In this document: piece after piece, positions 12,976 to 32,518 of the stretch | Numbering within the stretch: position 1 is the stretch's first letter | Layout: each line of letters starts with the position of its first letter | The notes under the pieces: generated by a model | Databases searched by the model: none | The model's input: only the letters and a program-made list of their open reading frames with translations | What the model was told of the DNA's origin: nothing | Source of the DNA: Octopus sinensis | Lineage: Eukaryota | Assembly (NCBI RefSeq): GCF_006345805.1 | Contig: NC_043021.1 | Span: 23,994,001-24,058,000 of the forward strand | Direction: 5' to 3' | Length of the DNA stretch: 64,000 nucleotides | Position numbers and translations under genes: made by a program

Positions 12976-13173
12976 TCATTTTATATTGAAGACATCGTGA
13001 TATACATCGCGGTTTTCCCAGCCAATTTTGCAGATATTACTTTCGTAGAAACAAGGCACATATGCATCATACAGCTTTTTAGCGATATTAGCACAGGTAG
13101 TGGAGTTCAGTTTGTAGACAATTTCTGCACTCATCAGTAAACAATGCCGAAGAGTGACATAATTTTGTCTTGC
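12976..13173 (-). CDS. Stanniocalcin-like secreted protein, coding exon 3 (to stop)
   Basis: Acceptor TTTTTGGCCTTTGCAG|, phase 0. Encodes ARQNYVTLRHCLLMSAEIVYKLNSTTCANIAKKLYDAYVPCFYESNICKIGWENRDVYHDVFNIK*, completing the stanniocalcin Cys spacing. Confidence 0.9.
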   Translation of the reverse strand, partial: ARQNYVTLRHCLLMSAEIVYKLNSTTCANIAKKLYDAYVPCFYESNICKIGWENRDVYHDVFNIK

Positions 13174-13618
13174 CTGCAAAGGCCAAAAACAGATGTCTGT
13201 GTAATAGAAACTAAGAGTACATAATTACTGATACCAAAACATATATGAAGCGGTAATTAATTTGAAAATATAAAATAATATTGGCAAAAGACAAGATGTG
13301 TGTGTGTGTAAATATATATATATATATTTAATATAGGATAGATTTTTCGAAATAAATTCTATCAATGGCCAGCATATTAAAAAATACCTTTAAAGGTTTG
13401 TTTATATATATATATATATTATATATATATATATATATATATATATATATATATATATATATATTATACATATGTACATATACATGCACACACACACACA
13501 CACACACATACATATATATATATATATATATATACACACACACACACACACATACATATATATATATAATATATATATATATATATATATATATGTGTGT
13601 GTGTGTGTGTGTGTGTGT

Positions 13619-13826
13619 GGAGGCGCAATGGTCCAGTGGTTAGGGAAGCGGACTCGCGGTCGTAGGATCACGGTTTCGATTCCCAAACCGGGCGTTGTGA
13701 GTGTTTATTGAGCGAAAACACCTAAAAAGCTCCACGAGTCTCCGGCGGAGGGTGGTGGCGATCCCTGCTATACTCTTTCGCCACAACTTTCTCTCACTCT
13801 TTCTTCTGTTGGCCTGCTCGCTTAGC
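13619..13826 (+). mobile_element. SINE family C, 3'-truncated
   Basis: GGAGGCGCAATGGTCCAGTGGTTAGGG...GGTTTCGATTCCC tRNA-like head with A/B boxes. Confidence 0.88.
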
Positions 13827-13889
13827 ATTAATATATATATATATATATATATATATATATATATATATATATATATATAAATTTATCCT

Positions 13890-14402
13890 CTATCTTTTGC
13901 TTCTTTCAATCATTTAACTGCGTCCGTGCTGGAGTATCACTGTGAAATATTTTAATCGAACAAATCGACCCCAGTACTTATTCTATCGGTATTTTTTGCC
14001 GAACTGCTTGGTTACGGGGAAGTAAAAACACCAACACTGGTTGTCGAACAGTGGTGGTGGACAAACACACACATATGCGATGGGCTTCTTCCAGTATACA
14101 ACCACTCTATCGTTCCATCACCGCTCATGTCTCTCTGAGACATTTAGAAATTCAACATTTCTAATTGTGATGATCAGTAAATAAATTTTACTGAAAATAG
14201 GATATATTTGCTGAGAGGTTGCGGTCATCTCAGCTAGCGAGACTTGCTACCCTGGACTGATGACGAGCAATACACTCAGAAGGCTTTATTCGGCCTGAGG
14301 CTATAGTAGGAGACATTCGCCCAAGGTTCCACACAGTGTGACTAAACTCGGAACTATGTGGTTAAGGTGCAGGCTTCTTACCACACAGGCATGCCTGCGC
14401 CG
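13890..14402 (-). mobile_element. SINE family B, old copy split by a 180-bp insert (14094-14272)
   Basis: 3' half 13890-14093, 5' half 14273-14402. Confidence 0.7.
14232..14281 (+). ncRNA. Hammerhead 5' half (truncated by SINE junction)
   Basis: GCTAGCGAGACTTGCTACCCTGGA-CTGATGA-CGAGcaatacaCTCA-GAA, then SINE sequence. Confidence 0.5.
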
Positions 14403-14442
14403 ATGCAAATTTTATATGTATAATGTAATTTAATATATACAG

Positions 14443-14530
14443 CTAGCAGTATCGCCCGGCGTTGCTCGGGTTTGTAAGGGAAATTAATATATAAGCATTT
14501 TTAGAGATGTAAAGTAATAGCCATCTCAAT
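14443..14530 (-). mobile_element. Helitron 3' end fragment, same family
   Basis: Reverse complement of CCCGAGCAACGCCGGGCGATACTGCTAG and the upstream about 60 bp of 18530-18604. Confidence 0.8.
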
Positions 14531-14753
14531 ACTTTCATTAGTTCCTATTTAATAACATTTTATGTTTCTATTAGTTACTGGTAATTTAATAGTATAGCTT
14601 GTAGTAGTGATATATTAATGAGTATGTAGTATTTTCTCATTATTAACTTTTGTATGATGAAATAATGTAGTTCACTTATAATTATTATATTATTATTAGA
14701 AATATTGAATTTCTAAATGTCTCAGAGAGACATGAACGGTGGTGGAGCGATAG

Positions 14754-15022
14754 AGTGGTTGTATGTCAACTCAACGTGACAGTCCCGTAAAGGAATTACA
14801 CCACCGCCATTTAGCCCTAGGAAACATCGAGCAATAAACTCAGAAACATATGTCTTCAGGTGCTAGTCCCAGTTGGCGGGGGTGATTGCCTCCCCTTTGC
14901 AAATATAAGGACACGAAAATGTGTCAAAGCCGACAGGAAACGTCGATGTTTCCTAGGGCTAAATGGCAGTGGTGTAATTCCCTTACGGGGTAGTCACATT
15001 GAGTTGACTGTATACAACCACT
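14754..15022. repeat. Inverted repeat, about 77-bp arms, 112-bp spacer
   Basis: 14754-14830 vs 14943-15022. Confidence 0.85.
14828..14878 (+). ncRNA. Hammerhead 3' half
   Basis: CGAGcaataaaCTCA-GAAAC-ATAT-GTC-TTCAGGTGCTAGTCCCAGTTGGC; complementary to the flank of the 5' half at 14232. Confidence 0.5.
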
Positions 15023-29462: not shown

Positions 29463-29857
29463 GTGACGGGAACATAAACACACCAGCATCGGTTGTCAAG
29501 CAATGCTAGGGGGACAAACACAGATACACAAACACACACACATACCATATATATATATATACATATATACGACGGGCTTCTTTCAGTTTCCGTCTACCAA
29601 ATCCACTCAAAAGCCTTTGGTCGGCCCGAGGCTATAGTAGAAGACACTTGCCCAAGGTGCCACGCAGTGGGACTGAGCTGGAACCATGTGGTTGGTAAAC
29701 AAGCTACTTACCACACAGCCACTCCTAGAAACCGATAGAATAAGTACTAGGCTTACGAAGAAATCCTAAGGTCGATTTCTTCGACTAAAACCCCTTAAGA
29801 TGGTGCTCCAGCATAGCCGCAGTCAAATAACTGAAACAAGTAAAAGAATAAAAGAGT
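29463..29857. mobile_element. SINE family B, 5' part (minus, 29463-29726) joined head-to-middle with 3' part (plus, 29727-29857)
   Basis: Both halves match the family consensus in opposite orientation. Confidence 0.8.
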
Positions 29858-29874
29858 ACATACGGACGTACACG

Positions 29875-30432
29875 CATACATACATACATACATACATACA
29901 TACATAACATACATACATACATACATACATACATACACATACATACATACATACATACATACATACATGCATATGTACGTACGTACATACATACATACAT
30001 ACATATATATACACACATACATACATACACATACATACATGCATACATACATATACACACTTACATACATACATACACATACATATATACACATACATAC
30101 ATACATACACATACATACATACACATACATACATAGATACATACATACATGCATACAAACACATACATACATACATACATACATGCATACATACATACAC
30201 ATACATACATACATACACACATACATACATACATACATACACACATACATACATGCATACATACATACACATACATACATACATACACACACATACATAC
30301 ATACATACATACATACATACATACATACATACATACATATATACATGCATACATACATACATACACATACATACATACACACACATACATACATACATAC
30401 ATACATACATACATATATACATACATACATAT
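29875..30432. repeat. (ATAC)n compound microsatellite
   Basis: Direct reading. Confidence 0.97.
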
Positions 30433-30879
30433 GCAAAGCAGTGCATGAATGACATTCAAAAAGTGAACAAAACCGAAACAACAAAGCAAATATCATCCTA
30501 GGTTTTGAAGACAGAAAATGATGGCTAGTTTACGGAAGATCACCAGCCATGTGAGGATGCTTATTGGCTGTAAACAAGCAAATCACTATACGTCGCACCA
30601 ACAAAGTAAAGGAGATAGAAATGATGTTTGGAGACAGCAAAGGGAGACCACTCGTTTGCAAACTGATTACTAGAATCCGTTTGCTAAAAGTGAGAAACTC
30701 CTACATCAGAAGAGAATAACCAAGAGAAGAACAATCTTAGGTTGTTCTGAACATAATGGCCGCTCTAAGTGTCGTGTTTTGAAACGCAATTTTATCATAG
30801 TATTTTAATTATACTTTAGGTGAATTTTGACATATTTAATAATTGATTTATGCTCTTTGATGATTTTTCTACCTATTTC

Positions 30880-31765
30880 AGACGGAAAACATTCATGGAG
30901 AATAGGCGTCCTTAATTATGAACATGACAATAAAAGAATCTTCGCTTGAATGAGTTCACGCTTGGGCACAATGCCGCCCAAACTGCTGCCAATATCAACA
31001 GAGCATGAGAAGAGGTGTCCAGAAGCGATTGCACAGAAATTCCGTACTCGTGATGAGCGCCTTGAAGATGAAGAAGGTAGAGGACGGTCATGCAGTCTTG
31101 ACAATGAACAATGGAAAGCAATTGTTGAACAAGACCCACGTCAAAGTGTCAAAGAAATGTCTCACGCACTTGGTGTCGGTATTTTATTTCAATGGTCTCA
31201 CGCAATCTGTAGAAGATTGGTACTGTGAAAATGCTCGATAAATGGGTACCGCATGAGCTCAATAAAAATCAAAAAGTTCGGCGTCTTGAAGTGTGTTCGA
31301 TGCTCTTTCTGCGCAACCCCAATGATCTTCTTCTTGAATGTGACGAAAATGGATACTTTATGATAACTGTAAACGATCAGGTCAATGGCTTGATCGTGAT
31401 GAGTACCGCAAACATTTCCCAAAGCCAAAGTTGCATCAGCAAAAGATTATGGTGACTGCCTGGTGGTCTGCAATTAATGTTGTCAATTACAGCTTTCTGG
31501 TAGACAATCAGAGCATCACAGCAGAGGTTTACTGCAATCAACTCGTTGAAATGCATGCTCACTTGCAGAAAAAATGAGACCTGCATTGGTGATCGGCGTG
31601 ACCCATTTCTGCTCCACGATAATGCAAAGCCACATATTGCAAGAATGACACTGCAGAAACTCATAGCTTTGGGATACAAGACATTACTACATCTTCCATG
31701 TTCTGATCTTTCACCCACTGACTACTATTTTTTTTTTAGCATTTAAACACGTTTTAAGTGATAAA
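30880..31765 (+). mobile_element. Decayed mariner transposase
   Basis: KWVPHEL, KIMVTAWW, LLHDNAKPH, SDLSPTDY; no clear TIR pair. Confidence 0.85.
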
Positions 31766-31784
31766 ACTTTCAGGTTCAAACCTG

Positions 31785-32345
31785 GGTACTGTTGGAATGT
31801 CCTAGTGAAAACCTTAAATTGTAAGCACAACAGACCTGATATAATGATTTGGGATTGAGAAGAGAAAGTGTGTACAGTTGTGGAAATTGCCTACCCAGCG
31901 CGTGTTAACATAAACCTGATGATCAATGAAAAGGAGAATACATATCATGAACTATTAAGAAATCTGCACTTACTTTAGCCAGATTACAAGTTCGGGTTTA
32001 TACCTGTTTATACTGGGATTCTGGGATATGTAAAAACTACTTAAATACCAATCTTGAGAAATTAGGCTTCTCAAAACCAGAAAGGAGAAAGCTGATTCAA
32101 AGACTACAGATCCAGTTCTTCACTGGAACTGTAAAAATCAGTAAAACTTTCCAGAAATTTATCATTTAAGTATATATGAGCATGTCAGATTATGCAACTA
32201 TATGCATGAGAAGACATACATAAAGCGAAACATAAAAATCTGCACTTATACATACATTCGTACAAAAACACCCTGTTGTTGATGTTGAAATGTTAATGGA
32301 TCTCGGTTAGAAACTGGCACTGCCTCTATTGACAAGAAATTTTGA
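31785..32345 (+). mobile_element. RLE-type LINE 3' fragment (endonuclease domain), antisense in intron 1 of the STC-like gene
   Basis: Reads KHNRPDIMIWD*EEKVCTVVEIAYP...FIPV with stops. Confidence 0.7.
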
Positions 32346-32394
32346 AATAAAACTGAATAATGACATACATAAAGACACACGCAAATACACTAAC

Positions 32395-32518
32395 CTTTTT
32401 GGGGCTGCATTTCTGTCTTGAAATTAGCTTCGCCTCCTTTTGCTTCGATTGTCAACATCAAAGACATCAAAAGAACCATGAAAAGCTTCAACATGTTTCC
32501 TATATTTGTTCTGTTCAT
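32395..32518 (-). CDS. Stanniocalcin-like secreted protein, coding exon 1 (signal peptide)
   Basis: Minus strand ATG at 32518 reads MNRTNIGNMLKLFMVLLMSLMLTIEA-KGGEANFKTEMQPQK+G, a hydrophobic signal-peptide-like stretch. It ends at donor AAAG|GTTAGT (124 nt, phase 1), matching the phase of exon 2. Met9 (32494) is an alternative start. Confidence 0.8.

Follow-up and report, generated by a model that had tools for sequence, protein, structure and literature searches.

What does a set of short exons scattered over the minus strand of an octopus chromosome encode, and where does the gene really end? We addressed this question in a window of 64,000 nucleotides from Octopus sinensis (NCBI RefSeq assembly GCF_006345805.1, contig NC_043021.1, positions 23,994,001 to 24,058,000 of the forward strand), whose internal numbering is used below. 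An initial annotation, made from the letters of the DNA alone, had proposed a hidden three-exon gene for a secreted, stanniocalcin (STC)-like protein in this window. Our analysis indicates that the gene, LOC118767942, is very probably a divergent STC-family gene of four exons cut by an in-frame TGA, whose intact product would be a secreted binding protein and whose truncated product, if the stop is real, would be a loss-of-function or hypomorphic form. It adds a divergent new member to a family already known, and represents no new kind of system.

The annotated gene and its 160-residue product

The three minus-strand exons proposed at first, with their GT/AG sites and phases of 1 and 0, agreed with our own reading of coordinates and junctions. 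The coding part of exon 1 (32395-32518, 124 nt) carries a signal-peptide-like N-terminus and ends in phase 1 at AAG/GTTAGT. Intron 1 (24827-32394, 7568 bp) leads to exon 2 (24666-24826, 161 nt), whose acceptor consists of a T13 tract followed by CCAG; this exon encodes Cys1 to Cys5 (CLNY..DCNFYNCLEERFPCG..YCK) and ends in phase 0 at the donor GAG/GTAAGT. After intron 2 (13174-24665, 11492 bp) comes exon 3, annotated at 13173-12976 (198 nt with its TGA, acceptor TTTGCAG). Its translated part (12979-13173) provides Cys6 to Cys9, and with the in-frame TGA at 12976-12978 the annotated protein terminates at residue 160. The intron sizes of 7.6 and 11.5 kb were thus right, and the description of these introns as filled with transposable elements was too strong: they are repeat-rich only, 14-45% of each intron of the gene being repeated in the window (24% for intron 1 and 45% for intron 2, which includes copies of an element of about 410 bp).

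Joining of the three exons gave a 483-nt open reading frame (ORF) of 160 residues, with nine cysteines at positions 47, 56, 61, 68, 82, 106, 122, 136 and 143, hence with spacings of 8, 4, 6, 13, 23, 15, 13 and 6, as had been predicted. In a database comparison this protein showed 100% identity, along its whole length, to XP_036369316.1, the product of O. sinensis LOC118767942, which NCBI labels "uncharacterized". On CM016883.1 (assembly GCA_006345805.1, region of about 23.994-24.058 Mb) the span of this gene is 19,543 bp, exactly that of the initial annotation. The gene signal is therefore real, as shown by this identity and by the recovery of exons 2 and 3 with an independent profile (see below), and it was not hidden: both the NCBI and the Octopus vulgaris annotations already hold it (XP_036369316.1 and CAI9741013.1).

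In keeping with a putative signal peptide, the N-terminus has a hydrophobic core at residues 12-24 (mean Kyte-Doolittle value 2.67), with a plausible cleavage site around residue 26 (A at -1, I at -3) and similar N-termini in the relatives. The announced NST sequon is present at N118, and a second one, NRT at N2, lies before the hydrophobic core inside the predicted signal peptide. An additional hydrophobic stretch, GFSLGASLIY, is found between Cys4 and Cys5. The frame opens with two in-frame ATGs, 32518-32516, which is the NCBI start giving 160 residues, and 32494-32492, at which the O. vulgaris model starts. The N-termini of paralogues align better with the second ATG, which would yield a more typical signal peptide.

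Assignment to the stanniocalcin family

Compared directly with Pfam, the 160-residue protein matched Stanniocalcin (PF03298) and no other family, with a score of 15.8 bits that falls short of the cut-off of 23 bits (E=0.0095, query residues 37-159 on positions 28-145 of 200 in the profile). The intact O. vulgaris orthologue described below scored 24.1 bits against the same cut-off. A word-indexed homologue search retrieved the protein itself only, its alignment-seeded repeat added a few mollusc proteins, and phmmer against PDB sequences gave only a chance match to a bacterial iron-regulated protein (E=0.53).

Against 1.84 billion representative sequences, phmmer detected 247 relatives at E<=1e-3, 16 of them at E<=1e-10, the nearest ones having E-values of 1e-23 to 1e-10. 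Named relatives were found in octopods (O. sinensis, O. vulgaris, O. bimaculoides, Argonauta), a chiton, a gastropod, bivalves, a nemertean, Saccoglossus, amphioxus, where they are multi-domain proteins, and fungi. When 10 of the 16 best relatives were scanned with Pfam, all passed the Stanniocalcin cut-off (26-62 bits). We then used an alignment of 110 sequences, the window protein and 109 relatives: in a Pfam scan of its members, 64 of the 109 relatives matched Stanniocalcin and no other family, and the window protein itself gave no match. The profile built from this alignment matched the human STC2 chains of PAPP-A complexes with E=6e-14. In that alignment the human STC2 spacing proved to be 8, 4, 5, 8, 23, 15, 13 and 6, the very spacing that had been given for vertebrates in the initial annotation. 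The octopus protein keeps the order of Cys1 to Cys9 and six of the eight spacings of STC2, and differs from it by one additional residue between Cys3 and Cys4 and five between Cys4 and Cys5. The nine cysteines occupy invariant or near-invariant columns in alignments of 15 and 110 sequences, and all nine columns are invariant in the octopod paralogues.

We also searched the window itself with a profile built without the window protein, in six frames cut into 2629 stop-to-stop pieces, so that the pieces on either side of the TGA were searched separately. Exon 2 was recovered with E=2e-16 and exon 3 with E=2e-11, followed by a piece further downstream (E=6.4e-4), which we show below to be a fourth exon; the next piece scored 0.35. 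Exons 2 to 4 were collinear on the minus strand, and neither tblastn nor the profile search revealed STC-like exons or tandem copies in the window besides the four exons of the gene.

Predicted fold

An AlphaFold2 model of the 160-residue protein, built on the alignment, had a mean predicted local distance difference test score (pLDDT) of 89.6. When compared with the PDB by Foldseek, its top four matches were all STC2 (probabilities of 0.98-1.00), the next having a probability of 0.08; STC2 chains were therefore the only confident matches of the model. Template modelling (TM) scores were about 0.45-0.55 (0.43-0.52 when normalised to the target) over 121-126 aligned columns. The model of the intact orthologue (pLDDT 89.8) contained two added, confidently predicted helices at residues 161-173 and 178-190, and the aligned region extended to 163-169 columns with target TM scores of 0.52-0.60. 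Its top four matches were again STC2 (0.98-1.0), and the next best was a designed helical repeat protein (probability 0.60, TM about 0.3). Profile and structure thus both point to STC2, contrary to the lack of any such match that the initial annotation had set as a refutation, and the proposal of a secreted cephalopod member of the STC or STC-like family is sustained by transitive homology, by the profile match and by the fold match.

A fourth exon beyond the stop

In all relatives with complete C-termini, a tenth cysteine sits in a helix with the pattern LWKNxxKxxxxC. The 160-residue protein is without it: its stop falls 17 residues past Cys9, and the tenth family cysteine is absent from the translated product. 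Where, then, is the Cys10 helix? By tblastn of the relatives against the window, it was located at 2159-2084 on the minus strand. Past the TGA, the same frame remains open over 29 nt (12947-12975, SKEQSPYSQ and two bases), the remainder of an ancestral exon 3 that ends in phase 2 at the donor GTAAGT (12941-12946). Intron 3 (2160-12946, 10787 bp), collinear in O. vulgaris with 97.6-98.3% identity, ends in a T-rich acceptor terminating in AAAG. Ancestral exon 4 follows at 2054-2159 on the minus strand and reads G, IWKDITKIASKCPTESGKKFAKWLKGIGKPKNLI and TAA. Its first base, G, completes the codon split by the phase-2 junction of exon 3, and the Cys10 codon (2125-2123) stands in phase within it, beyond the in-frame TGA.

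The same layout is seen in the paralogue LOC118767950, which shares chromosome and strand with our gene and lies about 117 kb from the window start (about 120 kb from exon 4): it has four exons with phases 1, 0 and 2, its last junction lies at the same place, and the intron 3 donor of our gene corresponds to its own in position and phase. Exons 3 and 4 are thus phase-matched, and the layout of the family gene at this locus is shown to be four exons with phases 1, 0 and 2. The initial three-exon model had missed the fourth, at 2159-2054. Vertebrate STC1 and STC2 genes likewise have four exons. Exon 4 remains untranslated in this assembly because of the TGA upstream. The locus is therefore a family member by descent, and its product as encoded in the assembly is a truncated form.

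In LOC118767950 (10001-67283 of the extracted region L002) the first intron is 44.8 kb long, and the O. vulgaris model CAI9741011 (P0007, 308 residues) looks as if an exon-2 copy of this gene had been fused to a paralogue next to it, which suggests a cluster of tandem genes whose models are imperfect.

A single exonic base separates the O. sinensis gene from that of O. vulgaris

The 90%-identity cluster of the window protein contains one other member, the O. vulgaris protein CAI9741013.1 (P0168, 197 residues, ten cysteines). This orthologue starts at the second in-frame Met, is identical through window residue 160 and has a sense codon at the TGA site. From there it continues with exactly the residues encoded by the window past the stop and in exon 4, and it ends 22 residues past Cys10. 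The count of nine cysteines is hence a product of truncation and no feature of design.

At the nucleotide level, 617 of 618 exonic bases are identical between the two species, the sole difference being position 12977, the middle base of the TGA; exons 1, 2 and 4 are identical together with their 10-nt flanks. The collinear non-coding sequence has diverged by 1.23%, from which 7.6 changes would be expected in 618 exonic bases against the one observed (Poisson P=0.004). The far smaller number of exonic changes implies that the whole four-exon coding sequence was constrained since the species split. The 135 nt past the stop are too short to discriminate by themselves (1.65 changes expected, 0 observed, P=0.19).

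What kind of stop is this? That the TGA is not biological, GCA_006345805.1 having at this base an error or a minor heterozygous allele, with O. sinensis making the ten-cysteine protein, is a serious contender that we place somewhat below an even chance. It concerns only the reality of the truncation and shares gene identity and structure with the interpretation given above. It is favoured by the fact that the only exonic difference between the species is exactly the stop-creating base, and by the untouched donor, acceptor and exon 4 downstream, as an error or a very young variant would predict. The absence of changes in the 135 nt after the stop is unremarkable and fits a real recent mutation equally well; moreover, the NCBI pipeline kept the stop, and the name of its model carries no correction flag.

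Alternatively, the gene could genuinely have three exons, the 160-residue, nine-cysteine product being the intended one and its stop selected. The NCBI model does stop at the same place, and the truncated structure is still predicted with confidence (pLDDT 89.6). Also, 29 nt separate the stop from the last exon junction, and under the vertebrate 50-55-nt rule a stop so near that junction would not mark the mRNA for decay, so that decay is not required. On the other side, the O. vulgaris orthologue reads through, Cys10 is present in all relatives with complete C-termini, phase-matched donor and acceptor and an open exon 4 are all kept, and an odd number of cysteines leaves Cys143 unpaired. We regard a selected three-exon product as having only a small probability.

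Recoding of the stop, by insertion of selenocysteine at UGA or by adenosine-to-inosine editing of UGA to UGG, would restore the full protein and would be consistent with a frame open past the TGA through exon 4. Cephalopods are indeed known for extensive mRNA editing. An Rfam search of the whole window revealed no selenocysteine insertion sequence (SECIS) and no other structured-RNA family; the orthologue has an ordinary sense codon at this site, the paralogues have no Cys in the stop column, and a 5′ G neighbour is the context least favoured by adenosine deaminases acting on RNA (ADAR). Such recoding appears extremely improbable. If LOC118767942 is taken as a truncated four-exon gene, its stop would be a very recent change, a variant carried by the sequenced animal, or an error in one base.

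Proposed action of the intact and truncated products

On the preferred reading of a four-exon family gene, the protein would consist of a predicted signal peptide followed by a compact helix bundle, presumably locked by five disulfides, Cys1-3, 2-5, 4-7, 6-8 and 9-10, by analogy with mapped STC1. In STC1, the disulfides mapped by Trindade in 2009 reportedly pair Cys9 with Cys10. Roch and Sherwood (2011; PMC5654410) confirm the Cys1-Cys3 bond and the five-disulfide scheme, and no more. The intact protein would be secreted and act outside the cell, where it may bind a partner protein through a rigid helical surface, as suggested by analogy with STC1 and STC2, which bind and block pappalysin proteases (PMC9579167).

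In this assembly, the TGA, 29 nt ahead of the exon 3 donor, halts translation at residue 160, with loss of the last two helices and of Cys10. In the profile-match alignment the stop corresponds approximately to K163 of STC2 and Cys10 to C181, and the dimer interface of STC2 is formed by helices between E169 and C211 (PMC9579167). The truncated product would therefore have Cys143 unpaired and lack the counterpart of the STC2 dimer-interface region; provided that the stop is real, the allele would most likely be one of lost or reduced (hypomorphic) function.

Several points weigh against this explanation or parts of it. The Cys9-Cys10 pairing is one that we assume from the disulfides of STC1 rather than from model coordinates. 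The window protein lies below the Pfam Stanniocalcin threshold, as said, and Foldseek E-values were weak (0.02-0.6) despite probabilities of about 1. The exact sequences of the window protein and of its O. vulgaris orthologue matched genomic contigs only, and our literature search found no paper mentioning the identifiers of the LOC118767942 locus. The TGA may be a true allele, a heterozygous variant or an assembly error. Finally, an interaction between invertebrate STC homologues and PAPP-A was judged unlikely by Kjeldsen and Oxvig (2025; PMC11925022), which makes the analogy with a binding partner weak.

A further idea is that the stop is real, recent and specific to O. sinensis, and that the 160-residue form, with Cys143 newly unpaired and the dimerisation helices gone, gained another action, such as the covalent capture of a partner in the manner of STC2 Cys120, or a use in saliva. 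It strikes us as decidedly improbable, more so than a selected three-exon product and less so than recoding.

Relation to vertebrate, invertebrate and salivary stanniocalcins

With vertebrate STC1 and STC2 (PF03298; PDB 7Y5Q, 8HGH, 8A7D, 8A7E), the octopus protein shares predicted secretion, the same all-helical fold and, in the octopus lineage, the Cys10 helix. Identity to STC2 in structural alignments is 12-15%. Unlike vertebrate STC1 and STC2, the intact orthologue lacks the eleventh, dimerising cysteine (it has ten only, and the window product nine). The C-terminal tail is far shorter, the intact protein having 197 residues against 247 and 302. The sequon is placed elsewhere, NST at N118 differing in position from the Asn62 of STC1. 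No equivalent of STC2 Cys120 and no extra cysteine between Cys6 and Cys7 are found in the octopus protein; invertebrate STC homologues generally lack Cys120, which bonds covalently to PAPP-A (PMC11925022). The window product stops before Cys10 and before the region corresponding to the dimer interface (E169-C211, PMC9579167).

Invertebrate and unicellular STCs (Roch and Sherwood 2011, PMC5654410) resemble the octopus lineage in their ten-cysteine core, predicted signal peptide, length of 150-300 residues, hydrophobic stretch between Cys4 and Cys5 and low pairwise identity (13-37%). The window protein differs from them by its own long branch: in a maximum-likelihood tree of 70 domains, it and its orthologue sit on a branch of 1.3 substitutions per site and of uncertain position, outside the well-supported main octopod clade. 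This placement supports no claim of an origin by tandem duplication or of orthology to canonical mollusc STC. A search of 5.8 billion clusters yielded no orthologue from a cephalopod other than the O. vulgaris/O. sinensis pair. LOC118767942 may thus be young, fast-evolving or simply unannotated elsewhere.

The octopod paralogues comprise O. sinensis LOC118767950 and a LOC115224535-like gene, O. vulgaris CAI9741011 and CAI9734732, O. bimaculoides LOC106876188 and LOC106876190, and a LOC115215717-like gene of Argonauta. They share the four exons and phases 1, 0 and 2 (shown for LOC118767950). The window protein is about 27-28% identical to them and lies outside their clade, and they pass the Pfam threshold more easily, with the exception of P0012.

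Could the product be a component of venom instead of serving as an endogenous signalling protein? Secreted STC-like proteins with high expression were reported from the posterior salivary glands of O. bimaculoides as well as H. maculosa, under the name 'stanniocalcin doppelganger toxins', SF5 (bioRxiv 10.64898/2026.02.02.703354). These belong to the same protein family and the same animal group and are secreted, and octopods have several STC-like paralogues, some in tandem on the same chromosome. SF5 members, on the other hand, were identified through plain BLASTp matches to stanniocalcin, whereas the window protein is too divergent for the Pfam threshold, and the tree puts it on its long branch outside the main octopod paralogue clade. 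A role in venom may be considered, and we hold it to be unlikely, if a little less so than a selected three-exon product.

A few relatives from other animals and from fungi showed peculiarities of their own. The amphioxus proteins (P0002, P0003, P0004) have two tandem stanniocalcin-like domains, which in P0003 (Branchiostoma floridae, 660 residues) follow a secreted phospholipase A2 domain to which they are fused; such an architecture is unusual in the stanniocalcin family. A two-domain STC-like protein occurs in a dipteran genome record (P0011, 357 residues, from the fly Pseudolycoriella hygida). Arthropods were reported to be without stanniocalcin (PMC5654410), and this record could reflect contamination, horizontal transfer or a genuine exception. 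A conserved member of 181 residues occurs in nematode-trapping fungi (P0015, Orbilia oligospora) and is labelled CFEM by some sources.

Surroundings of the gene

When 20 long ORFs from the introns and flanks were scanned with Pfam, the matches were limited to fragments of reverse transcriptase and a single C2H2 zinc-finger ORF. The latter (61151-62362, minus strand) starts with ATG and encodes 403 residues, nearly all of them C2H2 zinc fingers (12 zf-H2C2_2 stretches, E=6e-94); it probably belongs to the large C2H2 zinc-finger expansion of octopuses and constitutes the only other clear coding feature of the window besides the STC gene. The reverse-transcriptase fragments lie in introns 1 and 3 and just upstream of the gene: decayed RVT_1 fragments at 28202-28696 (plus strand, intron 1) and 33264-33992 (plus strand, upstream), and a weak match to zf-RVT at 6003-6797 (minus strand, intron 3).

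Sequence that recurs inside the window makes up about 35% of it. The interspersed repeat of about 410 bp, a size like that of short interspersed nuclear elements, occurs at 40069-40483, 23567-23966 and 20706-21091, and in the O. vulgaris region (L003) at 18640-19047 and 21534-21952, with 87-91% identity. An assembly gap of 100 N (32844-32943) is situated 325 bp upstream of the start codon, and collinearity with the O. vulgaris region (L003) ends there. Upstream of the gap, the window gave no match to the 10-kb stretch lying upstream of the O. vulgaris gene, a dispersed repeat excepted. The promoter region may thus be mis-joined or rearranged.

Implications

Mollusc stanniocalcin homologues have been known since 2011, and octopod STC-like salivary proteins were reported in 2026. 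What is added here is a family name and a fold for a protein listed as uncharacterized and domainless in NCBI and UniProt, and the correction of its gene model from three exons to four. The single-base nonsense difference between sibling octopuses may be an error that deserves correction in the assembly; otherwise it is a knock-out or truncation, of natural origin, in a secreted STC-like protein. If the stop is real, the very few coding differences between the two siblings would include the shortening of a secreted, fast-evolving protein of STC fold that is confined to this pair of species. A pair of species of which one has the truncated and the other the intact form could then offer a small handle on the function of invertebrate STC homologues.

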